Positions 4,329 to 61,348 of a DNA stretch of 64,000 nt are shown here, one piece after another; positions within the stretch are counted from its first letter, which is position 1; the number at the start of each line of letters is the position of its first letter. A model generated the notes under the pieces. The model had not been told where the DNA came from, searched no databases, and was given only the letters and a program-made list of their open reading frames with translations. The stretch covers positions 4,340,001 to 4,404,000 of the forward strand of contig NC_135769.1 in the NCBI RefSeq assembly GCF_052425735.1. Reading direction: 5' to 3'. Origin of the DNA: Oculina patagonica (Eukaryota). Both the position numbers and the translations under genes were made by a program.

Positions 4329-5291
4329 CTATTTGCCGCATTTAAGCAGTCGTTTGGCGGCTTGTCGAAAATCCGCCCTGTAAAATGAATATATGAATGG
4401 ATTTACACACGACTGCAGAAGGAGAAAAAACATTGACAGTTTCACCAAAAGTGGTGTGACTAGGTCAGCTCGTCCAAACACATAGGCAAAGTTGTAGACG
4501 GAACGAGGTATCCATGACAACACAAATACCAAGACAACCGCAGCGCAAGCGATACTTCCTCTTCTTTTCCGTGAGGTTTCGGCTCGCGTTTCCTCGCAAG
4601 AAATTTCTTGATTTACAGAGCTAATTTCCCTCAAGGGAAACGTTTTTCGTCTCTGCGTTTGAATGGCACGAACGATCATGACGTTTACAAGAGCCATGAT
4701 CACTGCCGGTAGCATGACAAGGAGAAAAACTAAAATAACGTTGTAAACTTTGTTGATAGCTTTGGCCTTTTCCTCTGACTGAGTGTGCCACCATATGTTG
4801 CGCGCTGTCGCAATAAGGGCAGGAAAAACCCAAGTTAAGATGACCATGCAGGTCACCTTGTTCCTCGTCATTTTACTACTGTACTGTAAAGGACACAGAA
4901 CAGCCAGGTATCTGTCATACGTGATGGCCAACAAGCTGAAAAACGACGAACTGAAAACCAAGTCTTTAGTCTGTGCTAAGATCCAACACGTGTCGGAAGA
5001 GAGGTATGGCTTACACCCCGCGCAAAATGAGGTGTAACCCGGTACTACCATGACTGCCATCAAAATGTCGCTCACTGCCAAGCTGACAAGAAAAATGTTC
5101 ATGTATTGCTGTCGAAGCTGCTTTGTTGAGAGAAAGATCACACAAGTAAGCGTGTTTCCTGCCAAAATAATCAAAGCTAGGACCCCGTTGACAAACCAGA
5201 AGATTTTTTGTAATGTCTCATCACAATATGCTGTTTCGGTGCCAGTTGAGTTGGTATCCATGGAAGTGTCGTTTGACGAGAGATCCTTCAT
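4329..5291 (-). CDS. Class A orphan GPCR, cluster family member 1 (320 aa)
   Basis: Seven hydrophobic segments; GN (TM1), SLAVSD (TM2), YDRY, W4.50, SWIP, NPFIY and helix 8 FRQAA; uninterrupted ORF. Confidence 0.95.
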   Translation of the reverse strand: MKDLSSNDTSMDTNSTGTETAYCDETLQKIFWFVNGVLALIILAGNTLTCVIFLSTKQLRQQYMNIFLVSLAVSDILMAVMVVPGYTSFCAGCKPYLSSDTCWILAQTKDLVFSSSFFSLLAITYDRYLAVLCPLQYSSKMTRNKVTCMVILTWVFPALIATARNIWWHTQSEEKAKAINKVYNVILVFLLVMLPAVIMALVNVMIVRAIQTQRRKTFPLREISSVNQEISCEETRAETSRKRRGSIACAAVVLVFVLSWIPRSVYNFAYVFGRADLVTPLLVKLSMFFLLLQSCVNPFIYSFYRADFRQAAKRLLKCGK

Positions 5292-6870
5292 GTTTTATCT
5301 GGTTGAAGAGAAGCTTCCGTTGATGTAGTTTAGAAGGTTGATGTAGATATTGACCGTGACTGTGGTTCGAGCTTCTTTTATATTTTCCTTGTTGTATAAT
5401 TACCAGCTGTGTAGCCTTTGACGTTAGCGGATTTTCTTAATGGCCAATACCTGTCAAAATACATACAAATTCGGATAATTTCCCTTTATTCGGATTTTTA
5501 ATGAGATATCTACGTCGCCCTAGGGGAGCCAAATCATGGTTATTATCTCATGCACATTGTTCAATAATAAACGAGATTTTTATTCTCCTTTGTACAGAGT
5601 TGATCCTAGACGTGGCGGATCTGTGTATCCCCCCTTTTGCTATTGTTCCAAGCTGAAGTTAATCTTGTTTGTTAGGAAACCCCAGAGAATTGCTTGCCTG
5701 CGTAGGTAGTTGTTTGGCCTTCAGAAATGCGCACGCTAGCTAGCAAACTCTTTAAGGGAATTCCCTAAAAAATAGAGCAATTTTAGATTTTGTTATGGAT
5801 TTACCCAAAGAAACCATACAGACAGACCCACTGAAAAGCTCAGTAAACCACGAATTTCTTTTCGTCGTGTTGCGTGAATTCCTTTTTAGTTTGTATACCT
5901 CATGTTAAACTGACTAATTTCCCTGCTGTGTTCGGACGCCAGATTTGACTGGGCAATTCAATAACTGAAATTTATATTGGACTTTTATTTAAACGAAGGA
6001 AAAATTATTTTCTTAATATTGGTCACGCGAAAAGAACTGTTTGAAACTGATTTATAGTTATGGAAATCAGCAATCATTGTTGCGTTGAAATAAATGGCGT
6101 TCTAGAAAATACGTTTCATTGGCGCTTTTTTTTTTGTACGCTGAAAGATACAGGTTGCTTATCTTATAAGCGTCAAAAAAATCACCTACTGACTTTCCCG
6201 TAATGAGAATTAACGTCTTCATGGCATGGAACTAAATTACCAAATGAGAACCAATATATCATTCAAAACAAAGGTCAAGGATAATCTTTTTACATATTCT
6301 TGCCTGCAGGAATAAAACCTTATGGTAATTTTTGCCCCTGAAAGGTCAAAGCGGTGAAATACACTTAATCCTTTGTGATTTCTTGGCTGTAAATAGATCA
6401 TACATTTTTTGTATCTGTTTCGATACCCGTCTCATTTTGTCATTCTAGAAAAGAAACCGTTTTCGAGGGTAAACTGTCATTCAGTTTCGGCTTGTCTATT
6501 TAAAAATCGATTTCTGCTTGAAGTTCATACATAGAGATTTATTTCAGTTTTTATTATATTCTGGCCAAGAACTTCTAGAGATTTCTAGAAATTTCTAGAG
6601 CCGTGTTTTCCCATAAATATTGCTCAACATGTACAACTAAATAAAACTTCTGCTATCCAGAGAAAGCGTTTTTATTTTTAGTTTTTGACGCAAAAATAAA
6701 GATGAAAATGACAGGCTAAATTGTCCTGACAATTGTGCATTGTGGACTTTACCGTGCGTCAGATCGGAATTACGATTAATATTTACTCACAGGAAAAGAA
6801 GTCTAATTTTGGAATTCATGAACTGCATTCGATCTTTTAAGCTCTTTAACATTAACTTTGGGATATATTT

Positions 6871-8017: not shown

Positions 8018-8248
8018 CAGGGCCGTAACCAGACCTTTGCCATGGACGAGGCAAGATCTTGCTAGTGGGTTCTGGGGGCATGCCCTCCAGAAAATTTTGA
8101 AATCTAGAAGCTATAAATCTCTTTTAGAGACATTTTTCATGCAGTATTTTTTGATAAAAATCAATCTTGTTCAAATGAAGATTGATTTTTGGGTAAAAAC
8201 TTAGACGAGGCAAGTGCCTCGTCTTGCCTCTTGCTTGTTACGGCCCTT
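8018..8248. mobile_element. MITE with CAGGGCCGTAAC termini
   Basis: TIR CAGGGCCGTAAC...GTTACGGCCCTT, flanked on both sides by CATGG; the same 3' end recurs at 43761-43787. Confidence 0.7.
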
Positions 8249-8902
8249 CATGGAATTGCAATTTTTGTTTTTATTTCGATCAGTCTTTAAGCAGCTAGAC
8301 CACATTGAAATTTTGGTAGCCTTCAAATTCAAAATGTTATAAGCTGCTGATGTTAAAACAGGTCTAAAACAGGTGTTGAAACAAGTATAACACAGTAATT
8401 TTTGGCGATGACAAATTTTGGCGGGAGGAAACCTCGACAAGAAGCACGTATTCCTTATTATATTATTATATCTTATCGCTGTTTCTATTTCTGAACAACA
8501 AATATCTTAATTTTGCAGCCTTAAGTTTGGAATAGGCCTAATAATTGATGCTATTACTTTCGGCCAATGAAAAGTTGGATCACTTGGGATTGACCGACGT
8601 CACCGTCACGTGATCATCGATCTCAACTGAAGTGATTGATGTTTTCAGCAATACAATAAAACGTTTAAGCAATACTATGACGAAAACGCATCTAAAACGT
8701 CAATAAAACGACCAATCATGGCTTACGTTTTGAAAATATTACGTTAGGCTGTGATTACTTAAAAATGTTCAGAACATTTATTTCAAAACTAACATCTTCA
8801 ATGTATGTAATAAGCAGTGCGGTATTAAATAGTCACTGAAATCTGGTGAAAACGTACAATTGATGACCGTCAATAACTTCATGCGATAATACGGTATTGA
8901 AA

Positions 8903-9964
8903 ATGGAAAAAGTGTGGATTAATGACACCAAGTTGGCAAATCTCGTTGACTTTGGCGAAGATGATTCAAACACAAAGACAGATGGTCACTGCATCAGGAC
9001 AATCGAACTCGCTTTTTGGATCTTGTATTCTTTAGTCGGAATCACGATTTTTATTGGAAATAGCTTCACTTGTATCGTTTTTCTAACATCGAAACGCCTT
9101 CGAAAGAACTTTATGAATGTTTTCCTGGTCAGCTTAGCGTTCTGGGACGTCCTAATGGCGATTTTTGTTGTTCCTTTTTATGCTACATACTGTAGCCGCG
9201 GTTGCAAATATTCCCTTACTAAATACTGTTGGCTGTTTAGAAAAGCAAAAGATTGTGTTCTTATTGCGGTGACTTTTAACATCTGTGCAATCACATACGA
9301 CCGGTATTTAGCAGTGGTTCAACCGCTTCACTATGGCGCGAAAATGACCAAGCGGCGTGTCACCGCTATTTTGGCCGGAGTTTGGACGCTGCCCGCTGTG
9401 GTGGCGGGAATCAGGAGCGCTTGGCATCACACAAAGAAAAACGATGACTTGCGTTACGCCAACAAACTGTACGACACTATACTGGTGGTAGTTTTCGTCA
9501 TGTTTGCGATTTTTGTGCTGTTAGTTGTAAACGTGAAGATTATGAGAGCTATTAAGAAGCACAACGAAAGAGAACTCACTGAGCAAAGTAGAAGAACGGC
9601 TTGGAAATCCCGTATGGAGAAAACCAAGCGAAGAAAGGGCACAAGGGCCTGTATCTTAGTGGTCTTTGTTTTTATGATTTGCTGGCTTCCGAGGATTGTC
9701 TATAACTTTAGCTATATAATCAAACCTCCTGGATTAGCTAGCCCTTTGTTTCTTAGGCTTGCTTTCTTTTGCCTTTTCTTGCAGTCTTCTGCAAATCCTT
9801 TTATTTACTCATTCTACAGATCTGAGTTTAGGAGAGCGGCCTTGAGGCTTGTAAGATGGCGCAAATCCGGAAGTAGGATTTACCCATTTGCCGAATTACA
9901 ACTAAGTAAATCCAAAGAAACAAATGACCTCGCTCAATCCGAGGCTGAGTTAACGAAAATGTGA
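8903..9964 (+). CDS. Class A orphan GPCR, family member 2 (about 353 aa)
   Basis: 7TM; GN, SLAFWD, YDRY, CWLP, NPFIY. First ATG is at 8903; the track start at 8897 is TTG. Confidence 0.95.
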   Translation: MEKVWINDTKLANLVDFGEDDSNTKTDGHCIRTIELAFWILYSLVGITIFIGNSFTCIVFLTSKRLRKNFMNVFLVSLAFWDVLMAIFVVPFYATYCSRGCKYSLTKYCWLFRKAKDCVLIAVTFNICAITYDRYLAVVQPLHYGAKMTKRRVTAILAGVWTLPAVVAGIRSAWHHTKKNDDLRYANKLYDTILVVVFVMFAIFVLLVVNVKIMRAIKKHNERELTEQSRRTAWKSRMEKTKRRKGTRACILVVFVFMICWLPRIVYNFSYIIKPPGLASPLFLRLAFFCLFLQSSANPFIYSFYRSEFRRAALRLVRWRKSGSRIYPFAELQLSKSKETNDLAQSEAELTKM

Positions 9965-12117
9965 CGTTGAATTCATCGATTTAGAGAAGCGCCATAAATT
10001 TTACAGTCTGTGCTTATAGTGTTTTTTTTTTTTTCAGAAAAACAAATGTGAATTTGCAATGTAAATGTTTTGTCAAAAGGTTAACATTTAAAAGCATGCA
10101 AAATGTGACAGATATTTGTTGAAATATTTCATACAGTGAATGAATGATGTATGTATATGTCAGTAATAAATAACGGACTAATCTTTACAAAATCGCTTGC
10201 ATGTGTTGTTGTTTTAACATTTTCACAAAATTAAAGGAAGCCTCTCTTTCAGTATTTTAAAGGGGCCAACTGTCAACTAGTATACAGGGCTCCTCCGTAA
10301 AATATATATTTAATGCATTTAATGGATGGATGAAAGATTAAAAGTGATCCCCCATTTTTTTTCTCTTTTCTCTTTTGTTTTTTTGCTTTTTGGCACGGTC
10401 AACCGATGCTACCACCCTCTCCTATCTATTTTCTGTCAAAATTAGCTTTAAAATTTTCAAAGCAATGTGTTCCTTAGTCAAGTTCCCTTTTGACGAGAAT
10501 ACAAATCACCCTCGAGATATGTAAACTGAGAAGAACTCTATATATAGATTACCTGCTATTCTTAAAGAGTTTTCCAGAGAAAATGTGGATTTTTAATGTG
10601 AATGTTCTGCCAAAGAGTTAAAATTAAACAGAGCTTGCATTGCAAAACATGACAAATATTTGTCGACATGGCGGCAATCTATGAATGTTTGTACATATAT
10701 TTACAAAGAAGTAAGAAAATGATCTTGACGAAATAGCTTGTGTTCTCGTTTTAACTTTTTCGCAGAAGAAAGCCTTAATTCGTGATCAAGGGTTTTTATT
10801 AAATGTAGCCACGTATTAACTCCGTATGTTTAATTAACGGATGGGTGAAGGTGAAAAAATTCACTGAAACACAATACCTTTTTTGGCACGATCCTGGCCT
10901 GTTTGTTGCTTTTCAGAATCAACTTTAAAATTTTCACGGCAATATGCTCCTTAACCAAGTTTCTACTGGATGAGAAATAAGCTAAATGACCATCGGTGGT
11001 ATAAAGCCAATTTGCAACTGACAGGTTGACACTGATGCGAGAGAGTTCTTAACTGCGGGGGTTTTTTGTTTATCTCCTTCCCGCGCGGTCCAGATGTTGA
11101 GTGAACTAAATCGCGCAATCTGATTGGTGAATCGAACGCTCCAGGTTATTTCATCTGGACCGCTCGCTCACACAGGCTATTTTTGGGCAGCCTTTTTCCT
11201 TGTTTCTTTTTATTTTATTTTAACCACAAAATAACTCGGTCAATGCGTCCACTTTTAGACCTCACGCTCGCTCAATATCAGTCATTTTTCCCAACTGCAT
11301 AACCGGTGGTTAATGGGTTTTGGCCGGTTTTGGTTGGCATTTATTCATCCGCGAAATTAATGCCTGTTTGAAGTTTTCCGGAGCGGAAGAGAACAAAAAC
11401 AAGTAAACAAATAATGCTGTACGAGATGGCATAAATGTATCAAATAGGTTGTGCCGGCGAAGACAACTGAAAATTTTTTCAAATGCCCATTTATGAGTTC
11501 ACCAAGTGTTTTATATCTAAAACGTGATGGTTAATTTCTTACTGTGTTAAAACAGAATTGAACGAGCTTAGTCAATTTCACCTGCCATCTGTATTTACAT
11601 ACGATTATGGAAATGCCTGACTTTTGCTATGGGTATTAGTTAAGAGAAAGAAAGCTGTCAAAATATAATTTAAAAACAATATTTCTTTTTGATCACGAAA
11701 ACGTTTTAATGCACTCTATTTATTTACTCCTGGTCGGTTTTGTGGACCCGTATGTAAGATTTAACGCTTCGTTTAGCCATAGAACTTGCTGGAAGACATT
11801 ATTTTGGAGTTTGGTTGCTTTAATAAAAAGATTCAGTGCCCTATTGTTGGGTGGTTATTTGGTTTATGAATAATACAAAATTTGTCAGTATAACTAACAT
11901 GGCTCATAAAATACGTCCTAACTAGCAAAAGCTTATCTTTGCCTCAGTAAAGAAAAAATAAAGGTCCTATCTGTTAAAAATACATTAAATGATGTTTTTT
12001 GGTGTAGGCTTAAATAAAGCGTAGCTATTGCCTCGTTTATTTCATTTGAACCCTTTCAAAGGAAAAGCCGATGAAAATTAAAGTATATGATATAAGGCAG
12101 CGCAAAAAATTAAAATT

Positions 12118-13152
12118 CTATTTTTGCACAGTTTTGTACGAGGTCAGAAGAATATTTGGCTTGGCGTGGGTTTTCTCCGATCTTTCCACGGTTCCGGCAT
12201 CAGCTTGGATTTGAGCATTTTCTGAAAGAAAGGACAAAGTTCGAAGAGCCGATAACATTGACTCTGCTCTCTCGACGACAAGATGACATCTTAATAAACG
12301 ATATGCCGCTCGTCTGAACTCCGATCTGTAAAACCAATAAATCAACGGATTAACCGCGGATTGCACAAATAAAAACAGGAAGCATATTCGGAAGAACAAC
12401 GGACTTGCCAGCCCCGGGGGTTCAACAATAAAACTGAAATTGTAAACAGCGCGCGGAAGCCAGCAAATTACAAACACGAGAACTACTGTAACACATGCAA
12501 TGGTCCCTTTGCGTCCCTGAGACGACATTACCGTTACATTGTTTTGTAAGTCGCGTTTTTCTCGTTCAGCTTGTTTTCTTATCGCTCTCAAAATCTTCAA
12601 ATTTGTTCTCAGCATTAGAACAACCAGTAAAACAACAAAACCGAGCACAATTATGCTGTCGTAGAGTTTATTTGCAAAGCGAGGGTCTGCTCCACTGTGT
12701 TGCCAAAAGTTGCGAATTCCCGCCAAAATCATCGGCAAACACCACACGACAGCTAGCATGGCGGTAACTCTTTTCGAAGTTATTTTGGAGCTGTATTGAA
12801 GCGGTTTTAATACTGCAATGTAACGGTCGTAGGTGATGGCGTACAGATTTAGGGTTGTGCCGATTTTGACGCAGTCCTTCGCTCCTCTCATGAGCCAACA
12901 GTAACTACGAAAAGAGTACTCGCACCCACGGCCACAGTAAATGGCATAAAATGGAACAACGAGCACGGACATAAGTATGTCCCACACGGCGAGGCTGACG
13001 AGAAGGACATTCATCTTGCTTTGGCGAAGTTTCTCGGTGGTCAAAAACACAACACATGCGAAAAGATTACCAGTGAAGATTACAACGCCAATAACGCCGT
13101 ATAAAATGAAAAACAAGGTTTCTGTTGACGTATCGCAGGTGGTGTTTCCCAT
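12118..13152 (-). CDS. Class A orphan GPCR, family member 3 (344 aa)
   Basis: 7TM; GN, SLAVWD, YDRY, CWLP, NPLIY; most similar by eye to member 2 (shared PPGLASPL). Confidence 0.95.
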   Translation of the reverse strand: MGNTTCDTSTETLFFILYGVIGVVIFTGNLFACVVFLTTEKLRQSKMNVLLVSLAVWDILMSVLVVPFYAIYCGRGCEYSFRSYCWLMRGAKDCVKIGTTLNLYAITYDRYIAVLKPLQYSSKITSKRVTAMLAVVWCLPMILAGIRNFWQHSGADPRFANKLYDSIIVLGFVVLLVVLMLRTNLKILRAIRKQAEREKRDLQNNVTVMSSQGRKGTIACVTVVLVFVICWLPRAVYNFSFIVEPPGLASPLFFRICFLFLFVQSAVNPLIYWFYRSEFRRAAYRLLRCHLVVERAESMLSALRTLSFLSENAQIQADAGTVERSEKTHAKPNILLTSYKTVQK

Positions 13153-16017: not shown

Positions 16018-16049
<32 letters not shown>

Positions 16050-19701: not shown

Positions 19702-20682
19702 TTAAATATTGAGATCATTAAGCGACGTAGTGGCGACTCTTCTAGATCCTGTAAATTTACAACAAATTAAGGCAAGCCCAGCTTGCCTGAAATCCGATCT
19801 GCAAAACGAATAAATAAACGGGTTGGCAGAAGATTGCATAAATAGCAACAACCATGCAATCTTCACTAAAACATCACTGACTAAATCAGGCCTGCCGAGC
19901 ACGAAACTAAAATTGACAAAAGCTAATGGCAGCCAGCTAACGAGAAAAACGAACACGACTAAAACGCACGATATTGTTCCCTTCCTGGCTTTTGTTCTTT
20001 CAAATCTAGTGTCCTGTTCTGTTCTCGCTTCGCTCACGCTATTTCTTTCTTGGCGCACACGTTGATTTTGCCGTCGTATCGCTTTGATTATCTTTACATT
20101 AATCACAAGAATGACAAGAATAGGCAACAAGGCAAAGGCGAAGATCAATGTACTGTTGTAAATCTTGTCTATTTTTCGCGCCTCCTCTTCGGACTCTGTG
20201 TGAAGCCATACGTTACGTAAAAGAGCAACAATAGAACTTAAAACCCAGACCCCAACCAAAATAAAGCTGACGGTTCTCTTTGTCATATAGTTGTGGTAGT
20301 GTAAAGGACGTAGCACCGCCAGGAATCTGTCAAAAGATATCGCAGCTAAATTAAACACTGTTCCTCCAAAGGCAATGTCTTTTAGTCCAGCCATCAACCA
20401 GCAGTGCTTGGACAGATCATATTTGCAGCCGTTACAGAAAACGGCATATCCAGGAACAACAAAAACCGCCATCATAATATCAGCTACTGCCAAGCTAACT
20501 AAGAAAATGTTCATGTAGCTTCGTCGAAGCCTTTTCGTTGTGACGAAGACCAGGAAAGTAAAGAGGTTTCCCGCCAATATAACAATGCCCGCGCTGCCAT
20601 ACAGAATCCAGAAAACCATTTCCAAAGTCTCGTTGCAGAGAGGGGTGATTTGAGTTGGTTTACTAGTTTTAACCGCTTCCAT
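19702..20682 (-). CDS. Class A orphan GPCR, family member 4 (about 326 aa)
   Basis: 7TM; GN, SLAVAD, FDRF, SWLP, NPFIY. First ATG is at 20682 (MEAVK). Confidence 0.95.
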   Translation of the reverse strand: MEAVKTSKPTQITPLCNETLEMVFWILYGSAGIVILAGNLFTFLVFVTTKRLRRSYMNIFLVSLAVADIMMAVFVVPGYAVFCNGCKYDLSKHCWLMAGLKDIAFGGTVFNLAAISFDRFLAVLRPLHYHNYMTKRTVSFILVGVWVLSSIVALLRNVWLHTESEEEARKIDKIYNSTLIFAFALLPILVILVINVKIIKAIRRQNQRVRQERNSVSEARTEQDTRFERTKARKGTISCVLVVFVFLVSWLPLAFVNFSFVLGRPDLVSDVLVKIAWLLLFMQSSANPFIYSFCRSDFRQAGLALICCKFTGSRRVATTSLNDLNI

Positions 20683-23599: not shown

Positions 23600-24637
23600 T
23601 TATTTTGTTTTTCGGGATGAAACCATAATTACAGATATATTATCATCCGATGAGTTTTGACATCGCAGTAAACGAATGGCAGCTTGCCGAAACTCTACTC
23701 TGTAAAATGAGTAAATAAATGGGTTTAAAGACGATTGAAGAAACAGGAAAAACAAGGATAACTGGATTAGTATTGGACTGACTAAATCTGCACGGCGAAA
23801 CAGAAAGCAAAAATTGTAATAAATACGAGGAAGCCAGCATAAGATGTAAACTAACACTACTACAACACACGCTAAAGTGCCTTTCAGTTTTTTAACATTG
23901 TTTACTGCTATACGGCTGTTTCTTCTTGAAAAACTTAAACGCATATTGGTAGAATTGGCGGCCTGGATTCTTTGAACTTGTTTTTTGATAACGTACAGGA
24001 TCCTGAAGTTAATCACCAGTAATAAAAAGAAAGGGAATATGACAAAAATAAAGATAAGGATATTTGAGTAAATTCTGTCAATGTGCAATGCTTCGTCTTT
24101 AAATTTACTGTGCTGCCAGATATTTCTTACGCCGGTAACAAGAACTGGTATTCCCCAAACTGCTGTCAAAATTAAAGTCATTTTCTTCTTTGTCATACTA
24201 GAGGCATAACGTAGAGGGCTGAAGAAGGCTTCGTGTCGGTCGAGTGAAATAGTCAGCAAATTGAGTATATTTGCTCCAAATGTGACTCCCTTGAGCGCTC
24301 TGATCAGCCAGCAGTGCTGAGTCAGCGAATATTTACATCCCTGGCAAAATACGGAGTAAAAAGGCATAACCAGTGCACCCATACATATGTCTGAAATGGC
24401 CAAGCTCACTAGATAGATGTTCATGTAGCTGCGACGTAGATGGCGCGTTTTCAGGAACACCGCGCAAGCCAGGCTATTTCCCGCCAAAATGAGGGCAGCA
24501 AGGACGCCGTTTACGACCCAGAAGATCATATCTAATGTCAGGTTGCATGGCAGGCCCAAAAATCCTTTTGTTGCGTGAAATGATACGTTGGTAGCCGTCC
24601 CAACATGAGAGGTGTTCATGTTTATGTGACTGCTCAT
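23600..24637 (-). CDS. Class A orphan GPCR, family member 5 (345 aa)
   Basis: 7TM; GN, SLAISD, LDRH, CWLP, NPFIY; N-glycosylation sequons in the N-terminus. Confidence 0.95.
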   Translation of the reverse strand: MSSHINMNTSHVGTATNVSFHATKGFLGLPCNLTLDMIFWVVNGVLAALILAGNSLACAVFLKTRHLRRSYMNIYLVSLAISDICMGALVMPFYSVFCQGCKYSLTQHCWLIRALKGVTFGANILNLLTISLDRHEAFFSPLRYASSMTKKKMTLILTAVWGIPVLVTGVRNIWQHSKFKDEALHIDRIYSNILIFIFVIFPFFLLLVINFRILYVIKKQVQRIQAANSTNMRLSFSRRNSRIAVNNVKKLKGTLACVVVVLVYILCWLPRIYYNFCFLFRRADLVSPILIQLSLFFLFLQSSLNPFIYSFYRVEFRQAAIRLLRCQNSSDDNISVIMVSSRKTK

Positions 24638-28612: not shown

Positions 28613-29707
28613 ATGAAGACTTTGGAGGAGGCAAACTCTTCTGATCGACTTACAGATAGTAGCAAAAACTATCACTGCAGCAAAGCATTAGACGAAGCAT
28701 TTTTAATCGTTTATGCTGTTTTAGGACTCGCCATTCTCGTTGGAAATACGTTTTGCTGTGTAGTGTTCTTGGCTACGCCAAAGCTTCGAAGGTGCTTCAT
28801 GAACATATTTTTGGTGAGTCTCGGATTTGCTGATATTTTTGTCGCGACCTTCGTGATTCCAGGCCATTGTGCTTTCTGTACAAGCTGCTCCAAGGATTTT
28901 AGTTTGCATAACGTGGACAGTGGAACTTGTGGATTCTTAGACGCTGTGAAGGACTACGTTTGGCTAGCGTCCGTTTTGAGTCTGCTTGGGATTACTTATG
29001 ATAGATATGTAGCGGTGATTCAACCACTACGCTATCAGTGCAAGATAAACCAGCGCACAGTCCTCAATATTTTGTCGGCAATTTGGCTATTACCCATTCC
29101 ATTTTCCTTCATAAAACCGATATTGAACGCTGCAAATGTGGACTTTCTTAAAGACGAATCTCGCAGTGAATCTATCTTTGACATAGTCGTGGTATCAGTA
29201 ATGATTATTCTACCGATGGCGATTTTATTCATCGTAAATATTATGATTACAAAAGCCATAAGAAATCAGCATCGAAAAGTGCAATGCGAAAGAAGTCAAA
29301 GCAAGGGGGACTTGAAACCGAAGGAAAGCCGCAGAAAAACAATTTCCTGCCTAATCGTTGTCCTTATATTTCTAGTTTGTTGGTTTCCCCGTTGTTTGCT
29401 TAATTTTCTGTTTTTATTTCAAATTCTCGATGCTAAGGGCTTGCGCCTTCTCGAGAAGATCTCATTGGTTTTTCTTTTTGTGCAATCTTCTGCAAACCCT
29501 TTCCTGTATTCTTTATACAGAAGAGACTTTTGCCAAGCTGCTAAGAGATTACTTCGACAAATGGTTCCTTTTGGATCAAGAATTTCTCCTTTTTTCAACC
29601 AAGTGAGACCTTATCTTGACAGCGAAGCCACGAGTCGAGTGGAACCCGTGTTTTTAAATTGTCAATCTCGACGTCAATCGACTGAAATTAAACTGCAGGA
29701 AATGTAA
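28613..29707 (+). CDS. Class A orphan GPCR, divergent family member 6 (about 364 aa)
   Basis: 7TM; GN, SLGFAD, YDRY, CWFP, NPFLY. First ATG is at 28613 (MKTLEE); longer ECL1 and C-tail ending EIKLQEM. Confidence 0.93.
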   Translation: MKTLEEANSSDRLTDSSKNYHCSKALDEAFLIVYAVLGLAILVGNTFCCVVFLATPKLRRCFMNIFLVSLGFADIFVATFVIPGHCAFCTSCSKDFSLHNVDSGTCGFLDAVKDYVWLASVLSLLGITYDRYVAVIQPLRYQCKINQRTVLNILSAIWLLPIPFSFIKPILNAANVDFLKDESRSESIFDIVVVSVMIILPMAILFIVNIMITKAIRNQHRKVQCERSQSKGDLKPKESRRKTISCLIVVLIFLVCWFPRCLLNFLFLFQILDAKGLRLLEKISLVFLFVQSSANPFLYSLYRRDFCQAAKRLLRQMVPFGSRISPFFNQVRPYLDSEATSRVEPVFLNCQSRRQSTEIKLQEM

Positions 29708-32227: not shown

Positions 32228-32700
32228 ATGCACCGGAAAAAACACCTATACGCAAAAATGTTCAGAAGTCAAAAATTAATTACAGTTTTGGTATCCTACT
32301 GAAATGAAAAGTGAACAGCTATGCCTGATGAATGGCACATGCCAACCAACGCAACATTTTGTTTTCTGAAGGAAACTACAATTTTACTGCATGTTTATAA
32401 TATTTTATTTTGACTTTAGACTTCAGATGTATTTCGCAATAAAATACTATGGCGAAAATTATGCTTTTACTAGCTTGAGTTACAGAACAAAACGAATCAT
32501 TATATACATGCATATACAGCGTTTTACATGAAGATTGTAATCAAGAATTATATACAAATACTGAAATTAATTTTAAAGGCCCTTAACTCTACCGTTTCAA
32601 GAGCAAATCACCCTAGTGTATGTTAAAAGAACCTTTTACATTTCCTGTAGTTTAATCTCTTTCGATTGACGTCGAGGTTCCACTTGGCTCGTGGATTTGG
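32228..32700 (-). repeat. Inverted copy of the GPCR 6 C-tail and 3' flank (about 29615-30120)
   Basis: The reverse complement matches, e.g. CTCTTGAAACGGTAGAGTTAAGG and ACATCTGAAGTCTAAAGTCA. Confidence 0.9.
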
Positions 32701-47854: not shown

Positions 47855-48802
47855 TTAGAATCTATTACATGACAGCAATTTAACAGCAGCACGTCGGAGG
47901 TCAGCTCTGTAAAACGAATAGATAAGTGGGTTAACAGATGACTGCACGATGAAGAGAAATATCGACATCTTCTGCAGTAGTATATTAACCCGTCCTCCGC
48001 TTATCAGATACTGGACGTTGAATGAGACTCGTGGAATCCACGACACCACAAACACTATCACAACAAGGGCGCAAGCCAATGTCCCCTTTCGTGTTCGAGC
48101 AACTTCTGCTTGAGTCTCTGGGTTTACAGCTTCGTCTGCCGCATTCTGAGGATGTCCGAGGGCGAAGACCTGACGCACCTGCTGTCGGATGGTCAATATG
48201 ATCTTGATATTTACCACAGAAATTATCGTGGATGGTATCAGGAGAACTACCAGCAGAAGTATGTTATTGTACAGGCCATTAAGCGCGATTAATTCAGCTC
48301 CAGTTGTTGTGTGTTGCCAAAAATTGCGGATTGAAGCGATGGTTAAGGACGCGCTCCAGACCATGATCATGATAAAGAAAGCTCTACGTCTAGTCATTAC
48401 GTCGGAGTAACGAAGGGGTCTGTAGACTGCCAAAGCGCGATCATAAGAAATTGTAAGCAAATTGTAGATACTCGAAGCGAGAGCGATGTCTTTCGAACCT
48501 TTGAAGAACCAACAGTGCTTGCTTAGCGCGTACTCGAAACAGCCAACGCAGAACAGCGAATAACCCGGAACGACGCACGAAGCCATTATGATGTCGGTGA
48601 CAGCCAGCGACGCGATAAATAGGTTCATCGGTTGCTGTCGAAGTCGGGGACTCGTTGCTATGGACAGGAACACCAGAACGTTGCCAAGGAGGATGACGGC
48701 GCCTACGGTAAGGTTGAGAACCATGAATGTTGTCTCGATGGACTGATCGCAGGATGAGGGTTCGGTTATGTTTGTTGCCGGTACTGAATTGCTCGTTGAC
48801 AT
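47855..48802 (-). CDS. Class A orphan GPCR, family member 7 (315 aa)
   Basis: 7TM; GN, SLAVTD, YDRA, SWIP, NPLIY. Confidence 0.95.
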   Translation of the reverse strand: MSTSNSVPATNITEPSSCDQSIETTFMVLNLTVGAVILLGNVLVFLSIATSPRLRQQPMNLFIASLAVTDIIMASCVVPGYSLFCVGCFEYALSKHCWFFKGSKDIALASSIYNLLTISYDRALAVYRPLRYSDVMTRRRAFFIMIMVWSASLTIASIRNFWQHTTTGAELIALNGLYNNILLLVVLLIPSTIISVVNIKIILTIRQQVRQVFALGHPQNAADEAVNPETQAEVARTRKGTLACALVVIVFVVSWIPRVSFNVQYLISGGRVNILLQKMSIFLFIVQSSVNPLIYSFYRADLRRAAVKLLSCNRF

Positions 48803-54587: not shown

Positions 54588-55634
54588 ATGAATTCCTCGA
54601 TTTCGGGCTTGGCTCCAGAAAACTTTACTTTAATACCAGGCCAAACTTTGCAGCCGCAAAATGAATCTGATTACAAGACATCATATTGCGACCATCGACT
54701 TGATGTGGTGTTTTGGGTGGTCAATGGCATAATCGGTGTGGTTATCTTACTAGGGAACAGTTTTACATGCGCTGTATTCTTATCCAACTCTTACTTGAGA
54801 CGGAATTACATGAATATCTATCTGATAAGCCTTTCTATGGCCGATATTTCAATGGCAGTGTTAGTGGTGCCGGGTTTTGCCGCATTTTGTAGTGGTTGCA
54901 CTTATAAATGGAGCGAGTACTGCTGGTTTTTCGGAGGCGCGCGAGACATTGCGTTTCCTGCTACCGTCCTCAATCTACTGGCCATCACCTATGATAGATA
55001 CACAGCCGTTATAAGACCGTTGCATTACGCAGCGACGATGACAAATCGCAAGGTTTTCACCATTCTTCTAGCTGTCTGGTTGACACCGCTAATCGTTTCG
55101 TCCCTGAGAAATATTTGGCATCATTCGTGGAGCGAAGAAGCGGTCAAAAACGCTGAAACAGTTTACAACGCAGTACTGGCTACAATGTTTGCGTTGTCGC
55201 CACTCCCTGTGTTGCTAATAGTGAACCTTAAGATTATGAGAGCTATAAAGAACCATGGACAGCGAATTCACGCAGATATGGTAGAGCGAATGTCTTTCAC
55301 GAATCACACGGACAGAGGATTTTCCACCCGGCAAATCGATAAAGAATTCGGCAGTAGTGCTGCAATAAACGAACAAAATCGCAGAAATACTTCACGAAGG
55401 AGAAAAGGAACCATGTCCTGTGTTTTTGTTGTTTTGATTTTTATTATTTCTTGGCTTCCGAGAGCTTATCTGAATTTGTGCAGCCTTTTCGGCCGACAAG
55501 ACTTAACGAGCCCATTGCTCGTAAAACTTTCTTTGTTTTTTCTCTTTTTCCAGTCTTCGGTCAACCCTGTAATTTATTCTTTTTTTAGAAATGATTTTCG
55601 CCAAGCGGCCCGCCGATTAATTAAACGGCACTAA
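54588..55634 (+). CDS. Class A orphan GPCR, family member 8 (348 aa)
   Basis: 7TM; GN, SLSMAD, YDRY, SWLP, NPVIY; longest ICL3. Confidence 0.95.
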   Translation: MNSSISGLAPENFTLIPGQTLQPQNESDYKTSYCDHRLDVVFWVVNGIIGVVILLGNSFTCAVFLSNSYLRRNYMNIYLISLSMADISMAVLVVPGFAAFCSGCTYKWSEYCWFFGGARDIAFPATVLNLLAITYDRYTAVIRPLHYAATMTNRKVFTILLAVWLTPLIVSSLRNIWHHSWSEEAVKNAETVYNAVLATMFALSPLPVLLIVNLKIMRAIKNHGQRIHADMVERMSFTNHTDRGFSTRQIDKEFGSSAAINEQNRRNTSRRRKGTMSCVFVVLIFIISWLPRAYLNLCSLFGRQDLTSPLLVKLSLFFLFFQSSVNPVIYSFFRNDFRQAARRLIKRH

Positions 55635-55789: not shown

Positions 55790-57810
55790 GTAAGGACTAG
55801 AGGGCTAATTAGGGACGCGCCAAAGATGGGGAGCCGATTCTCTACAGCAAACACCATCAGAGTGATGTGGATGACGCCTCTGAGAGACCCCCCAGTGGCA
55901 CAGGTGCCCCGCCACCAGAACAGATCCCCCCCGACTGGGAGAATCCACCCCGGAGCGCAGGTGGGGCCAGTGCGAGGCCCACCCAGGAGCCCCCGCAGCC
56001 CCAGCTCCCGCCCACCCGACACCCGAGAGGGGGGGGGGGGGGAGCCCCCCCCCGCCAGCCCCGGGCCCGGAGCGTCAAATAATTTCGCTCGCTTTTACGA
56101 ACTCCGGGGAGGGGCTCCTCCTCCACCCCCCCTTGTACGATGTGGGGTGTGATTGCTTGTACGTCCGAGTAGTTAGATACCGCAGTCCGTGCTTTTTGTC
56201 GTGCTTTTTGTTTTTTGGTTCTTGCGGTCGTTGGGTTTTCTTCTGCTTTTTCTTTTCTTTTTCTTGTTTTCTTGTTAGTGGCGGTCTGGGTAGTTCAGTC
56301 CTGTTGTGCAGTATGAGCTCTGTGCCTAGTCAGCGACTGCGCTTTCCTTCCCGTTTCCTTTCCGCTGTTTTGAGCGCCTTTCAGTTGTCTCTTTAGTCGA
56401 CATAAGGGGTCTTTGATTGTGAGAGCGTTTCAGTGTCTCGTGCGGAGTAGTGCTTACACTCTTTTTCTCTTTCGAGGTCTTGTGACTTTTTCATTTTGCG
56501 AGTTTTATTTCTGTTTGTCTTTTTTTCCCGATATACTATTTAGATCTGATGCCACCTTTGTATGATTTTCTCTTTTTTGATTCTTTTCCCTCGTTTTTTT
56601 TTCCCGTATTGTGAGGGCGTGTTCTCCTCTGTTTCGGGTTCCTTCCCTGCGCGAGGTCCCGCGTTTGTTCTATTATTTTTTGTTTAATTCTTTTGTTTTT
56701 TATTTTTCATTTTAGATGTGTGCTTTGTTCTTTTTGTTTTCTTGAGTTGATTTCCGAGGCTCAGCGGTGTCGCTAGTGTCTTGCGTCTGCTCGCGTCCTT
56801 CTTTTCGGCGCGGCGGAGGGCCTCGGGTGCCGGAGTGTGCGTTTGTTTTCTTTTTTTTGCTGTCGTCTGTGTGGCGGTTCAGCTGCTTGTTGTCGTGTCT
56901 TTTTCTTTCGTGGCGCGGTGCGGCTCGCTAGTGCCTGTGATGCGGTGTGCCGCCGGCTTTGCCTTGTTTTTTTTAGGATCGTTCGGGGGTGTGTGTTTTC
57001 TTCTTTTTCCTGAAGCTTTTTAGCCCCGTTAGTGCCCGGGTCCTCTGCGTTCGCCCATCTTTGTGTTTTTTCTTTTTTTTTTTTTTTGTTCAGTACAGTT
57101 CCCCCCTCCAACACATCTTCTCTTCTCCAGTGCCCATTTTGGTAGCTCTTTCTTTTGCTATTCTTTGTGCTTTGAATTAGATGTGTTGGTTCTGTTGTAG
57201 TCCTATTCAGAAGCGTTGTAGATTCTCATCGTTCTTAAGATTGCTAGGTGCTTTTTTTCTCTTTTCTTGTGTCTCTGTTTGTTGTTGTGTTTTGTTAGAG
57301 GAGCTTGCGGTGGTGGTGTTTGTTTTGGTGGTCGCATCGCATGCAGTCGCTTTTTTTTTTGTGTTCTGAGTCCTGTCTCTGGTGTCAGTGATTGAGAGCT
57401 CCCTAGTGTGACGCGCCGCTGCCTAGTGTGTAGCACTTCTCTTTTGCTCTCGTGGTGGTGCTTTGAGTGTTGTGGTGGTCGTCTCGACTGTTTGCTCTGA
57501 CCGCTTTTTCTGTGAATCGGTCGTGCTGATGGGACTGTCTTTGGGCCCCAGTAGGGGGGGGGGGTGGTGGAGCCTGGGGGGTAGCGGAGCCTAGCGTTGA
57601 GTTGTGTGACGGAGCGTCTGATCGCGTAGCAGGGAATCTTTGGTTGTCAGGTGTCTTTGTGCTCCCCCCCTTACTGAGAAGTGATAGTTTTATTGTAGTG
57701 CGGGCTAGAGGTGATATTGTGTTTGTTCGCTGCTCTTAGTTCTGTTTGTTGGGGTTTGTTGTCTGTCTGGGTTGCCCCCTTCTGGGTCTTTTGTCTGTTT
57801 CTCTGACAAT
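55790..57810 (-). mobile_element. Extremely degenerate LINE (RTE-like) remnant or low-accuracy sequence
   Basis: Sharp A depletion on the plus strand and many homopolymers. Minus-strand translations weakly echo the RTE endonuclease (GGTVL..K..W ~ GGTLF.HK..TW) and the RTE C-terminal W.GH...GKR.RGRP region. Confidence 0.4.
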
Positions 57811-58136
57811 GACACTTAAAGCAAAAATAAATGGCTTGTTCTTGAACGTTTAAAAAATGGTTTAATGTTGTTCTTTGCTGCCTTTAAGTAGTACACCAGA
57901 CGAATTGCCCACAAAAATTTAAAATAGAATCAACAAAATACTAAACGACAGAAAATCCTAAAAGCAATTTTATTAACCATATCATTCGAGAACGTGTTTA
58001 CGTGGGAGCAGGTGAAATATTTGACGACCCTATTTATGTATCTCTAGGCTGCACATTCTTAAATATTTTTCCAAAATATCCAAAACAATACCAACCAGAC
58101 CAAAGTGGCTCAGAGACTCAAAATCAGGGGGCTGCA

Positions 58137-58239
58137 TAACCTGCGATCAGGCGTTCTTTTTTTTCGCGGCTGAAGGAAAGAGAAAAAAGGAACTTATTTT
58201 TCCTCCCGCTGCAAAATAAGAATGCCTGATCGCAGGTTA
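58137..58239. mobile_element. 103-bp MITE, 22-bp TIR, 9-bp TSD
   Basis: GGGGCTGCA|TAACCTGCGATCAGGC...GCCTGATCGCAGGTTA|GGGGCTGCA. Confidence 0.9.
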
Positions 58240-60358
58240 GGGGCTGCATTAAACCAATTACTGGAGAAATAGTTACAAAGCAATTGGTGATTTTCAAAAG
58301 TCTTCTCCGGGGAAACTTGGTGGGTCTTCGATTATTCCAGCTACTATTATCTGCTGCGTTTAATAACTTTAACCACCATTCGGATATCATCATGAAAAAA
58401 TATATATCAATTTTTAATTACACTTGTTTTCATTTGTTTATATACTGTTCTTATTATGCGTTTTAAAGTGCCGATCTCTGGAAAGAGTTAATCACTTAAA
58501 TGGGAGTTTCATATTAGATTTCTGTTTTCAAAATATAAGGCGTTTACGCAGCTCTGACGGACTAGAGAGCCCAAAGAAGATATCCATTGAATGCTTAGTG
58601 TTTTTTGTAAATGCAGCTTTGCGATTATTTCTCTGGCCTGTATTCAGTTTGTCTTTTGTTGTCAGATTATCCTTAAACAGAATCGGCCTATCAGGCGAGT
58701 TTGTTCGAGCTATGGTTCGTATTTGGCGAAAAGCAGTCAATCAAAAATACCCATGGCGGGACCAAACGAGCCTGATTTGCCGCCGAGGCGAAATACGATT
58801 GGGTATTTGCCGTTCCCAAGTTCAGCTTAACCTCAGCAAAGGACTTGATATATATCGCAGGAAATCGATCAGGACAGTATACAAGGCTTCCGATTGGCTT
58901 ATTGCGACTTTAGGCACGATAACAGGCTCACGTTTAATTTGGGTCACATTCACGAGCCTTTTCGCTCGCGGACTCAAGCCCGCGGCCTTGCGATCGCGAG
59001 AGTGACCCAAATGTGGCTGCTAGAACTAAAGAGAACTGAAGATAGTAATTCCCCTCTTACTCTATAAAAAGGAGAATTATTTCACTGTCAAGACTGTCAA
59101 TAGAATTAAGTTGCAAGAATCATGAACCGTGGCCGTGGCTTGTATGACGCAGCGTTTCGTCCCAGCCAAGGGACTTTTCAGATACTTAGCTTTCCTGAAG
59201 GAGTCAAGGTTGACTAGGCGCAACAAATGCTATTTTTTTTCTCCTAATCCCTCGATCCGCAACTATTTTCGTTTAATCCGAATGCGCATTACTTGAAAGT
59301 TCCTGTTGTATAGTTTCACTGCAACGACTGTAGTTGTTAATTTTTTTAAACCGATTGTTTAAGAAGTTTCCTATTATCGATCGCTATTTTATATGAATGT
59401 TAAGTTACAGAATTATGTTAAACATTAATATAATCCCTAAACGAAGTTCCCATGATCCGAACCTCAGGCAGACAGAGCCTGGAATCCAGGCCAAATTTCT
59501 CAGCTGATCTTGGTTACGCCGTACGACGGTAGTTTCGAAATCCACGAATCCGCTCAATTTATGTCAAAGGTCCGCATCCCTGCGCGTTTTAATGCCAAAT
59601 TTGTCCATCCGCGAACCTATTCATCCCCCCCCCCCCCCCTTGAAGAGACGTCCCTTTGCCGAGAGGAGACGCAGCGAAACACTAGCCATGATTTACGAAT
59701 TCGCTTATATTTAATTTGGTCCGTTTCGTGTTGTTGTTCAGGACTGAAGTGCTCCAAATACCAGGCACGGGATATCAACTCTAACCCAGTCCCTACTTAT
59801 TACAAATAAGTCGAGAAGGCATGGGCCTTGAAGGATGATCAAGGGCGCGTGTAGTCTTGGGAGGAATGATTACTGGTTTGCAATAAACTCGCGCTTTAAC
59901 AGAAAGCGATCTACAAAACACGTGGTGCGAATTTATACGCGTGTACGCGTGTGCACGTGGCACGATTTTATACACCTGTTCGGACAGACCTAAGCAAGTT
60001 TTTTATAAGTTTGTAAAAAAACGGAAGTTTCGAAATTAAAACTGCGCCGTGTCAAATCAATCATTTGTTAAAGCTTCAGCGCCTTTGAGAATAAGCCAAC
60101 CATTTAATTTACTTCTCACCCGTAATGCATCTGTTATTTACACTGGCAACACTAAACGTGACTTAAAACAACTGCTGAAAAAATAACATCGAGCTCCTAA
60201 GTGCTTTAATTAGGCAGCTTTATCCGCTGCAATATAACTTTTCCTGCAAATTGATTTAGTACATGCAAGGTAAATTAAATGAATCGTACTCTAGGCAGTC
60301 AGTTTTGTTTAAGCTAGCTCACAGTACGTGCAGAATTTGGATCTTTGTAAGCTCAGCT

Positions 60359-61348
60359 ATGTCGAACATTTCTCAGTTAAATAATTCAAATCGTATGCTA
60401 TCTAGCCCTCCAAAACTTCCCGTCTTCCAACCCGATGTTGATGAAATTAACGACGATGAAAACTGCAGCAGAGAGCTGGATTTTCTCTTCTGGATTATAA
60501 ACGGCGTCATCGGAGCTTTCATTCTGCTGGGAAACACTCTAACATGTGCAGCTTTTCTACGCTTTGAGAATCTCCGACGTAGCTGCATGAATGTTCTTTT
60601 GCTCAGCCTGGCCATTTGTGATGTTCTTATGGGGGTGACAGTAACGCCTGGCTACGCTGCATTCTGCACTGGCTGCACATACGGCTTCAGTAAGCTCTGC
60701 TGGCTTTTCGAAGGCGGGAAAGATGTCTGCTTTCTGAACTCCACGTTTAATCTTCTAGCGATCTCCTATGACAGGCAGCTAGCCATTTTTCAGCCGCTGA
60801 AATATCAGGCCAAGATGTCGCGAAGGAAAATTCGCTGGATTTTGACCGCAGTTTGGATCGTGCCTGTGTGTCTTGCCGCTGTAAGAAACATTTGGTCTCA
60901 CAACCAACCGGCGAATGTCGTCGAAGAGTGGAACAGGACCTATTCATACATTTTACTGTGTGTTTTTGTGATAGTCCCCATTATCACTGTCAGCGTTATC
61001 AATGTCGCAATTTTCTGCGCCATTAGAAAACAAAGACGAAAAATAACAGGTTTCGACTACAACAATTATAAATACTGGTGGAAAAAGAAGAATCGTATGC
61101 AATATATTCAACTGCGAAAGGGCACGCTTTCATGCGTTTTAGTAGTTATCGCATTTGTAGTTTGCTGGCTTCCTAGAGCTTTTTATTACTTCTTTTATTT
61201 GTTCGGCCGTCCCGAGTTAGTTACGCCGTTTCTGCGTAAAATTTCGGTGACTTTTCTGCTGTTTCAATCTTCGACAAATCCTTTTATTTACTCTTTTTAC
61301 AGAAGGGAGTTCCGACAAGCTGTCAGAATTTTAATTAAATGTCAGTAG
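60359..61348 (+). CDS. Class A orphan GPCR, family member 9 (329 aa from 60359; in-frame upstream ATG at 60263)
   Basis: 7TM; GN, SLAICD, YDRQ, CWLP, NPFIY; start codon ambiguous. Confidence 0.93.
   Translation: MSNISQLNNSNRMLSSPPKLPVFQPDVDEINDDENCSRELDFLFWIINGVIGAFILLGNTLTCAAFLRFENLRRSCMNVLLLSLAICDVLMGVTVTPGYAAFCTGCTYGFSKLCWLFEGGKDVCFLNSTFNLLAISYDRQLAIFQPLKYQAKMSRRKIRWILTAVWIVPVCLAAVRNIWSHNQPANVVEEWNRTYSYILLCVFVIVPIITVSVINVAIFCAIRKQRRKITGFDYNNYKYWWKKKNRMQYIQLRKGTLSCVLVVIAFVVCWLPRAFYYFFYLFGRPELVTPFLRKISVTFLLFQSSTNPFIYSFYRREFRQAVRILIKCQ

Follow-up and report, generated by a model that had tools for sequence, protein, structure and literature searches.

Few features of class A GPCRs are as conserved as the disulfide between TM3 and ECL2, a bond that shapes the lid of the ligand pocket and is usual in the class, though not required of it. 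Melanocortin, S1P/LPA, cannabinoid and MRGPR receptors and GPR20 do without it, and these generally lack C3.25 or have substitute disulfides that lie inside ECL2 or ECL3, join the N-terminus to ECL3, or connect TM4 with TM5; among them, we know of no receptor in which C3.25 is bonded to the end of TM2. In the adenosine A2A receptor, TM2 ends in F-C-x-x-C and C3.25 follows, as in the receptors described here, and both ECL1 cysteines and C3.25 are bonded to three cysteines of ECL2, with a separate CPDC motif in ECL3 forming a small intraloop disulfide. Aminergic receptors use Asp3.32 as the counter-ion of the amine. GPR20 is described as having an ECL2 that is short and lacks the conserved disulfide, along with a functional N-terminal cap (PMC12444479).

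Cnidarians possess a large clade of their own beside the monoamine receptors (Goulty et al. 2023, PMC10244343), and the receptors of the monoamine-related cluster lay outside the screen of Thiel et al. 2024 and are still orphan (PMC11087051). The four-Cys family analyzed here sits in this orphan, monoamine-related cnidarian cluster; its Nematostella member EDO36055 is listed as GPR184, with the tag MAR, in the supplement of Thiel et al. 2024 (PMC11087051). The main texts of Thiel et al. 2024 (PMC11087051) and Goulty et al. 2023 (PMC10244343) do not mention the cysteine arrangement, and the literature searched contained neither a published description of it nor a characterized member. Names in the protein atlas are those of generic amine-like clusters, with nothing specific, and several homologs are automatically named 'adenosine receptor A2a-like'.

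Nine receptor genes in Oculina patagonica

The window, meaning the whole 64,000-nucleotide stretch of O. patagonica DNA analyzed, contains nine intact, intronless class A GPCR paralogs, R1 to R9, at the positions given in Table 1, which were verified by an ORF check; tblastn found no further copies of the hexacorallian four-Cys receptor family in the window. These genes form a tandem array of a single family of orphan, monoamine-related class A GPCRs of stony corals and sea anemones (Hexacorallia). Membership in class A is evident from Pfam PF00001 (7tm_1), which scores 129.6 and 116.5 bits against a gathering cutoff of 30.5, and from the signatures N1.50, D2.50, D/E-R-Y, W4.50, P5.50, W6.48-x-P6.50 and NPxxY, each present in at least 90% of the family. 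Pairwise identity among the nine ranges from 30 to 52% (mean 40%), and 41 columns are invariant, five of them cysteines, as against 3% cysteine overall. The ORF list starts R2, R4 and R6 at TTG (8897 in R2), with the first ATG at 8903, 20682 and 28613, respectively. Contigs from runs labelled RNA cover 4300-5452 at R1 and 8797-9990 at R2 while leaving the DNA between the two genes uncovered, a coverage that makes transcription of R1 and R2 likely.

Table 1. Receptor genes of the array and the codons of their four extracellular cysteines (window positions).
Gene	Feature	Position	Strand	C1.27	C2.65	C2.68/2.69	C3.25	Basis
R1	Class A GPCR, 320 aa; second ECL1 Cys at 2.68	4329..5291	-	5223-5225	5022-5024	5013-5015	4986-4988	ORF; Pfam 7tm_1 E 1.9e-37; anchored numbering
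R2	Class A GPCR, CxxxC	8903..9964	+	8990-8992	9191-9193	9203-9205	9227-9229	ORF, anchored numbering
R3	Class A GPCR, CxxxC; N-terminus very short (residue 6 = Cys)	12118..13152	-	13135-13137	12934-12936	12922-12924	12898-12900	
R4	Class A GPCR	19702..20682	-	20635-20637	20434-20436	20425-20427	20401-20403	ORF, anchored numbering
R5	Class A GPCR, DRH replaces DRY	23600..24637	-	24545-24547	24344-24346	24335-24337	24311-24313	
R6	Class A GPCR, most divergent of the nine	28613..29707	+	28676-28678	28877-28879	28886-28888	28928-28930	
R7	Class A GPCR	47855..48802	-	48749-48751	48548-48550	48539-48541	48512-48514	ORF, anchored numbering
R8	Class A GPCR	54588..55634	+	54687-54689	54888-54890	54897-54899	54921-54923	ORF, anchored numbering
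R9	Class A GPCR	60263..61348	+	60464-60466	60665-60667	60674-60676	60698-60700	ORF, anchored numbering

Cysteine positions were counted from the anchors N1.50, D2.50 and R3.50, a procedure that needs no multiple alignment. All position claims rest on this counting, since MAFFT and hmmalign place the outgroup TM3 cysteine under the second ECL1 cysteine of the family, ECL1 being longer in the four-Cys family. With anchored numbering, the four extracellular cysteines reported by the first-pass annotation are found in all nine genes at 1.27 (23 residues before N1.50), 2.65, 2.68/2.69 and 3.25; the fifth invariant cysteine, at 6.37, is intracellular. The same annotation had described the ECL1 motif as CxxC: the cysteine pair is indeed universal in the array, but its spacing is not, as R2 and R3 carry one residue more. 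ECL2 proper was correctly read as Cys-free in all nine genes, the sole nearby cysteine of R9 sitting within TM5, and the reported W-x-H at the end of TM4 occurs in eight of them. The exception, R6, also has a long ECL1, with 13 residues from the second ECL1 cysteine to C3.25, and an additional cysteine at 2.62. Across the wider family W-x-H is weaker, with His in 51% and Trp in 73%.

A hexacorallian family with a Cys-free ECL2

The homolog set comprised 156 full-length sequences of stony corals and sea anemones. An exhaustive search of representatives with R8 as the query delimits a discrete subclade, with 42 representatives at E < 1e-30 followed by a gap, and a third search, for which P0118 was the seed, yielded nothing new beyond close relatives of the P0118 clade. 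In the tree, the four-Cys family is one strongly supported clade (support 98-100). The pattern noticed in the window extends to these wider homologs, all four cysteines being present in 144 of the 156, and is a family trait not confined to the window; among representatives at 80% identity, C2.65 and C3.25 are conserved in 99% and 100%, respectively. The cysteines come almost exclusively in even sets, with exactly four extracellular ones in 110 of 149 members; the number is odd in 30 of 149 when extracellular segments are drawn generously. Between 4.56 and 5.45, 143 of the 156 homologs have no cysteine and the remainder carry only sporadic intramembrane ones, in contrast to the outgroup, where an ECL2 cysteine is present in 48 of the 52 sequences in which C3.25 is aligned. 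The family thus keeps C3.25 but lacks the ECL2 partner (45.50) of the canonical disulfide.

This conservation also bears on the simplest explanation of the pattern, namely that nothing about the cysteines is special and that they are shared only because the genes of the array duplicated recently. R1 to R9 are tandem duplicates, as that reading supposes, but paralogs sharing only 30-52% of their residues make it barely credible, and it is refuted by sea-anemone homologs at about 40% identity, Nematostella and Actinostola among them, which retain the same cysteines.

Besides C1.27, C2.65, C2.68/2.69 and C3.25, the family is characterized by its Cys-free ECL2, a W4.50-P5.50 distance of about 41 residues, K/R3.32-D3.33, N5.58, C6.37, R6.51 and Q7.45. 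The four cysteines, N5.58 and Q7.45 are present in all nine window genes; deviations at other positions are G3.33 in R5, L6.51 in R4 and Y6.55 in R9. The best PDB matches in sequence and fold are aminergic receptors (D1, beta-1, H2 and TAAR1), with which the family shares P2.59, DRY, CWxP and NPxxY, and its TM4-end Trp aligns with the 'SWH' of D1. Nevertheless, position 3.32, Asp in aminergic receptors, is K or R in 98% of the family (K 75%, R 23%), so the family is not aminergic; the TM3-ECL2 disulfide is also absent, and 5.58 is Asn instead of the aminergic Tyr. The A2A receptor (about 22-26% identity) likewise ranks among the top matches in sequence and fold, and N6.55, conserved in 89% of the family, is common to both. 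An adenosine receptor identity was nonetheless rejected, as of the adenosine receptor hallmarks (ECL1 cysteines bonded to ECL2 cysteines, a long ECL2 bearing an aromatic lid, N6.55 and S7.42/H7.43) only N6.55 is shared: ECL2 is Cys-free and about 20 residues shorter than in A2A, the TM2 cysteines lie four residues earlier (2.65/2.68 versus 2.69/2.72), and 7.42/7.43 are L/F and not S/H. Melanocortin, S1P/LPA, cannabinoid and MRGPR receptors and GPR20 resemble the family in their short or untethered ECL2 and in having alternative disulfides elsewhere, but are not close sequence relatives. The four-Cys family varies the structure of an established receptor class and is not a new type of system.

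Candidate pairing of the extracellular cysteines

An AF2 model of R1 (pLDDT 87.9), whose fold agrees with those of solved class A receptors at a query-normalized TM-score of about 0.7, places C2.65 (residue 90) at the end of TM2, C3.25 (residue 102) at the start of TM3 and C1.27 two residues ahead of TM1. ECL1 is its least confident part (residues 91-100, mean pLDDT 62). TM4 (143-170) and TM5 (173-224) are connected by a two-residue turn, and since ECL2 is this Cys-free turn between two extended helices, the usual TM3-ECL2 disulfide is impossible. In the class A sodium site D2.50 faces S3.39, and the antiparallel register of TM2 and TM3, in which position numbers sum to about 5.89, would set 2.64/2.65 level with 3.25/3.23.

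Natural variants that retain fewer cysteines bear on the pairing. Both C1.27 and C2.68 are missing from P0068, P0080, P0090, P0074, P0118 and P0126, as well as from P0280 and P0283; such two-Cys members are few, and the pair they keep is always C2.65 and C3.25. Exceptions to joint loss are P0011, which lacks C2.68 only, and P0121, which lacks C2.68 but has extra Cys elsewhere. The joint absence represents one or two lineages: the free tree requires two changes, whereas a tree holding the first six of these sequences together fits equally well or better (AU test, p-AU 0.60), so both cysteines may have disappeared in one event. A test of independent pairs had no power, and we make no claim of replicated covariation. 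A second, well-supported anthozoan clade of about 20 representatives, with members in Actinia, Actinostola and Montipora, has only C2.64 and C3.23, separated by 5-7 residues. Its ECL2 is also short and Cys-free, with a W4.50-to-P5.50 distance of about 40-42 residues, and it adjoins the four-Cys family in the tree through a weakly supported join (28).

Of the three possible pairings, the one preferred by the first-pass annotation, in which one disulfide links the N-terminus to ECL1 and another links ECL1 to TM3, is favored by these sequences, as two-Cys members and two-Cys clade alike keep a cysteine at the end of TM2 and one at the start of TM3. We therefore hold it reasonably probable that C3.25 pairs with C2.65 and C1.27 with C2.68/2.69, over a Cys-free ECL2. 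The core of the arrangement is probably a TM2-TM3 staple closing ECL1, this being the only cysteine pair that the two-Cys lineages and the two-Cys clade keep, and the bridge from the N-terminus to ECL1 looks like an added unit.

A crossed arrangement, C1.27-C2.65 with C2.68/2.69-C3.25, has in its favor that the four cysteines lie at a common membrane-water boundary and near each other in sequence, and that the loop of 7-17 residues that separates the second ECL1 cysteine from C3.25 across the family could sterically accommodate the bond. It is unlikely, because the two-Cys members and the entire two-Cys clade retain cysteines at the end of TM2 and the start of TM3, and not C2.68 and C3.25; moreover, C1.27 without C2.68 is never seen where the N-terminus is complete, the record of P0011 notwithstanding.

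A disulfide within the ECL1 CxxC, accompanied by a C1.27-C3.25 bond, has precedent insofar as small intraloop disulfides are known in class A receptors, and x2 is the commonest spacing in the family. This spacing is not constant, however (x2 in 98, x3 in 40 and x4 in 9 of 147 members), and with such a bond C2.65 and C2.68 would be expected to disappear as a pair, whereas the observed co-loss is of C1.27 and C2.68 with C2.65 and C3.25 kept. None of the 156 homologs has C1.27 and C3.25 but neither ECL1 cysteine, and we give this pairing little chance.

The same variation weakens the proposal, already rated less likely in the first-pass annotation, that some or all of the cysteines, with or without the TM4-end His, form an extracellular metal-binding site or redox switch and not permanent disulfides. 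Four clustered cysteines, some of them arranged as CxxC, with W-x-H nearby in eight of the nine window genes, invite such a reading. Yet only about half of the family has that His and some three quarters the Trp, the variable spacing departs from the fixed C-x-x-C with conserved partner ligands of thioredoxin-like sites, and functional-looking two-Cys relatives exist. Extracellular cysteines in even sets are normally oxidized. A metal or redox site is thus unlikely, with only a very slim probability.

If the preferred pairs, C2.65-C3.25 and C1.27-C2.68/2.69, are oxidized, the first would bond C3.25 to the final residue of TM2, stapling TM2 to TM3 and turning ECL1 into a covalent ring, while the second, an accessory disulfide, would tie C1.27, just ahead of TM1, to the second ECL1 cysteine. 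Together they would stiffen the extracellular face on its TM1-TM2-TM3 side; the pocket on the TM3-TM7 side would lack an ECL2 lid. This pocket is lined by the conserved K/R3.32, D3.33, R6.51, N6.55 and K/R7.36; its basic residues (K/R3.32, R6.51 and K/R7.36), together with D3.33, disfavor amine ligands. More tentatively, as a possibility we would not yet expect to hold, these receptors may constitute an undescribed class A subclass: hexacorallian monoamine-related GPCRs in which an ECL1-closing TM2-TM3 staple replaces the TM3-ECL2 disulfide, ECL2 is reduced to a helical hairpin, and, in the family of the window, a disulfide-tethered N-terminus covers a strongly basic pocket as its lid or as a ligand built into the receptor.

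In keeping C3.25 while its partner has seemingly moved to the end of TM2, this large and old radiation of receptors offers a natural experiment in rebuilding the extracellular face. The basic pocket together with D3.33 limits the ligands to be considered for these receptors, which may bear on chemosensing or on the settlement of coral larvae. When such orphan receptors of corals and anemones are modeled by homology or screened for ligands with AlphaFold models, the correct disulfides should be imposed, and expression constructs should retain the N-terminal cysteine.

Receptor genes of the window

Eleven open reading frames of at least 220 aa are present in the window, and nine of them encode seven-helix proteins related to one another, the paralogs R1 to R9, with pairwise identities of 30-52% (mean 40%) in a nine-way alignment. 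ORF calling also accepts TTG starts, and R2, R4 and R6 are therefore reported from their first ATG; these three starts had to be adjusted. R1 and R8, the two members scanned, score far over the cutoff for Pfam 7tm_1. A tblastn search of the window with the nine proteins returned no additional family copies or fragments, its sole other match being a distant one to an unrelated tenth GPCR. At E 1e-5 or better it also gave nothing at 32228-33213, where any likeness to the family is therefore short. The homologs mark the DNA as that of a stony coral: the closest named one is from Orbicella faveolata (86% identity), with further homologs in Montipora, Stylophora and Pocillopora and in the sea anemones Nematostella and Actinostola. 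R1 (4300-5452) and R2 (8797-9990) are covered by contigs of RNA-labelled runs, while the DNA between them is uncovered save for one dispersed repeat and some faint patches, which suggests that both genes are transcribed.

Features of the window, in window positions
Feature	Position	Strand	Description
R1	4329-5291	minus	family GPCR ORF
Repeat element	8018-8247		230-bp element with sharp ends
R2	8903-9964	plus	family GPCR ORF, start at first ATG
R3	12118-13152	minus	family GPCR ORF
R4	19702-20682	minus	family GPCR ORF, start at first ATG
R5	23600-24637	minus	family GPCR ORF
R6	28613-29707	plus	family GPCR ORF, start at first ATG
Tenth GPCR	41104-42099	plus	unrelated to the family, mid-array
Repeat fragment	43760-43786		27-bp fragment of the 230-bp element
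Repeat ORF	45035-45892	plus	285-aa ORF of tandem peptide repeat
R7	47855-48802	minus	family GPCR ORF
R8	54588-55634	plus	family GPCR ORF
Composition outlier	56001-60000		directly upstream of R9
R9	60263-61348	plus	family GPCR ORF

Cysteine pattern and its conservation

Counted from N1.50, D2.50 and R3.50, without reliance on any alignment, four extracellular Cys are invariant in R1-R9: 1.27, 2.65, 2.68 (2.69 in R2 and R3) and 3.25. The nine-way alignment holds 41 invariant columns, five of them Cys, vs 3% of residues overall; the fifth Cys, 6.37, is intracellular. All nine lack Cys in ECL2, and eight have W-x-H at the TM4 end. The first-pass annotation had described just this N-terminal Cys (now placed at 1.27), C3.25, Cys-free ECL2 and W-x-H count, all of which are borne out; the Cys pair it saw after TM2 is also present in all nine, but CxxC is not universal, two genes having CxxxC.

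Searched exhaustively, a set of 1.84 billion representatives yields a discrete family: 42 representatives at E < 1e-30 are followed by a fall to generic class A scores. Among 156 full-length family sequences pooled from several homolog searches, 144 carry all four Cys, so that the conservation in wider homologs on which the first-pass annotation had staked its reading holds; in representatives thinned to 80% identity, C2.65 is conserved in 99% and C3.25 in 100%. The whole 4.56-5.45 stretch is Cys-free in 143 of the 156, and W4.50 lies 36-43 residues (median 41) from P5.50. An ECL2 Cys is found in 48 of 52 outgroup sequences having an aligned C3.25.

Pairing of the four cysteines

The four Cys are probably joined in two disulfides, whatever the pairing. 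The best-supported arrangement, drawn from natural Cys states, a neighbouring clade and geometry, is the one proposed at the outset, with one bond from the N-terminus to ECL1 and another from ECL1 to TM3. Its exact form, which we favour with moderate confidence, would be C2.65-C3.25 together with C1.27-C2.68/2.69: the former would act as a TM2-TM3 staple that closes ECL1 and substitutes for the canonical TM3-ECL2 bond, and the latter as an accessory bond tying the N-terminus to ECL1.

Exactly four extracellular Cys occur in 110 of 149 members. Among the collected homologs, the two-Cys members P0068, P0080, P0090, P0118 and P0126, like their close relatives P0280 and P0283, invariably have C2.65 and C3.25, and C1.27 and C2.68 are always absent jointly, a state with which both other pairings of the four Cys are at odds. 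In P0074 the canonical C1.27 and C2.68 are missing too, and its N-terminus carries two Cys elsewhere, at 1.17 and 1.24. Wherever the N-terminus is complete, family sequences without C1.27 have no C2.68 either. Two sequences depart from the joint absence: P0011, in which C2.68 alone is missing, and P0121, in which C2.68 is missing and extra Cys occur in the N-terminus and at 3.26. The two-Cys state takes two changes on the free tree, but a tree uniting all six sequences lacking C1.27 and C2.68 in one clade is not rejected by the AU test (p 0.60), so the joint absence may reflect one event rather than two. The covariation that the first-pass annotation had suggested looking for is thus seen as a suggestive co-loss, not as replicated covariation.

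A second anthozoan clade of about 20 representatives, the named ones from Actinia, Actinostola and Montipora, has an ECL2 as short as that of the window family, and its only extracellular Cys are 2.64 and 3.23, 5-7 residues apart; with Cys absent from both the N-terminus and ECL2, these two can pair only with each other. Tree support is 100 for this clade and 100 for the window family, their join being weak (28).

In the AF2 model of R1 (mean pLDDT 87.9, pTM 0.85), C2.65 (residue 90) is the exact end of TM2, C3.25 (residue 102) the exact start of TM3, and C1.27 lies two residues ahead of TM1; ECL1 is the weakest region (pLDDT about 62). In class A receptors D2.50 lies opposite S3.39 at the sodium site, and by the same antiparallel register 2.64/2.65 would be level with 3.25/3.23. 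TM4 (143-170) and TM5 (173-224) are linked by a two-residue turn, and ECL2 is therefore modelled as a helical hairpin, not a lid. A metal or redox site, offered as the less likely reading in the first-pass annotation, is at odds with the variable Cys-Cys spacing of ECL1 (x2 n=98, x3 n=40, x4 n=9) and with the poorly conserved His of W-x-H, kept in only 51% of the family (Trp in 73%).

Cnidarian context and known receptors

A third related clade (P0204, P0173, P0188, P0183 and relatives), from the octocoral Dendronephthya and the scyphozoan jellyfish Sanderia and Rhopilema, likewise has a short ECL2 and contains no Cys in ECL1, the top of TM3 or ECL2; presumably it has no extracellular disulfide at all on that side, and loss of the canonical bond thus appears widespread in this cnidarian radiation. 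Among the clades compared, the TM2-TM3 Cys pair is found in hexacorallians only, and the four-Cys form is its most elaborate version. The tree backbone is weak and does not fix the order of events (C3.25 retained vs re-gained). Three Nematostella members, EDO36055, EDO36058 and EDO36056 (P0126, P0115, P0288), lie on one 474-kb scaffold with consecutive accession numbers, so sea anemones, too, seem to have the family in an array; EDO36055 is a natural two-Cys form, adjoined there by four-Cys members.

The family signature comprises K/R3.32 (98%), D3.33 (90%), N5.58 (100%, in place of the activation-switch Tyr), R6.51 (90%) and K/R7.36 (93%), together with C6.37, N6.55 and Q7.45; it spans all nine genes (e.g., R1 residues 109-110, 203, 263 and 284). 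So basic a pocket is a hint that the ligands are anions or peptides, not amines. Among solved structures, sequence and fold both come closest to those of the D1 dopamine, beta-1 adrenergic, H2, TAAR1 and adenosine A2A receptors (about 22-26% identity). An aminergic identity is ruled out by the K or R at 3.32, and an adenosine-like one because the likeness ends at N6.55, which adenosine receptors share, and an only superficially similar F-C-x-x-C at the TM2 end.

Several class A receptors dispense with the TM3-ECL2 bond through other solutions, among them melanocortin, S1P/LPA, cannabinoid and MRGPR receptors. Neither these nor GPR20 are known to have C3.25 bonded to TM2. GPR20 also lacks the TM3-ECL2 bond and uses another solution (PMC12444479). 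The Cys arrangement, of which no published description was found in the literature searched, is a real observation and a new structural variant inside a known receptor class. The family that carries it is orphan, and public databases already contain its sequences under misleading automatic names. Thiel et al. 2024 (PMC11087051) list EDO36055 as GPR184, tagged MAR, among their supplementary sequences and name monoamine-related receptors as future candidates outside the tested set, and Goulty et al. 2023 (PMC10244343) describe a large cnidarian-specific clade adjoining monoamine receptors.

The tenth GPCR shares 23% identity with the family (Pfam 7tm_1, 52.8 bits), lacks C3.25 and has S-Q-Y at the DRY site and D-A-F-I-Y at the NPxxY site. 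The repeat ORF, with units like RVIARVSSHACH, lies in a 44-48 kb stretch of GC 0.50 and is probably a minisatellite, not a gene; a sub-threshold Pfam match to Galaxin-like repeats (17.9 bits vs a cutoff of 28) seems to be an artefact of low complexity. The 230-bp element, without a match in Rfam, reaches a summed depth of up to about 6500 across all four RNA-labelled runs with flanks that vary from contig to contig, and thus behaves as a dispersed repeat of SINE or MITE type present in many transcripts; elsewhere in the window it recurs as just the one fragment. The outlier upstream of R9 has an AT skew of -0.26 and GC of 0.45, vs about 0.37-0.40 across most of the window.
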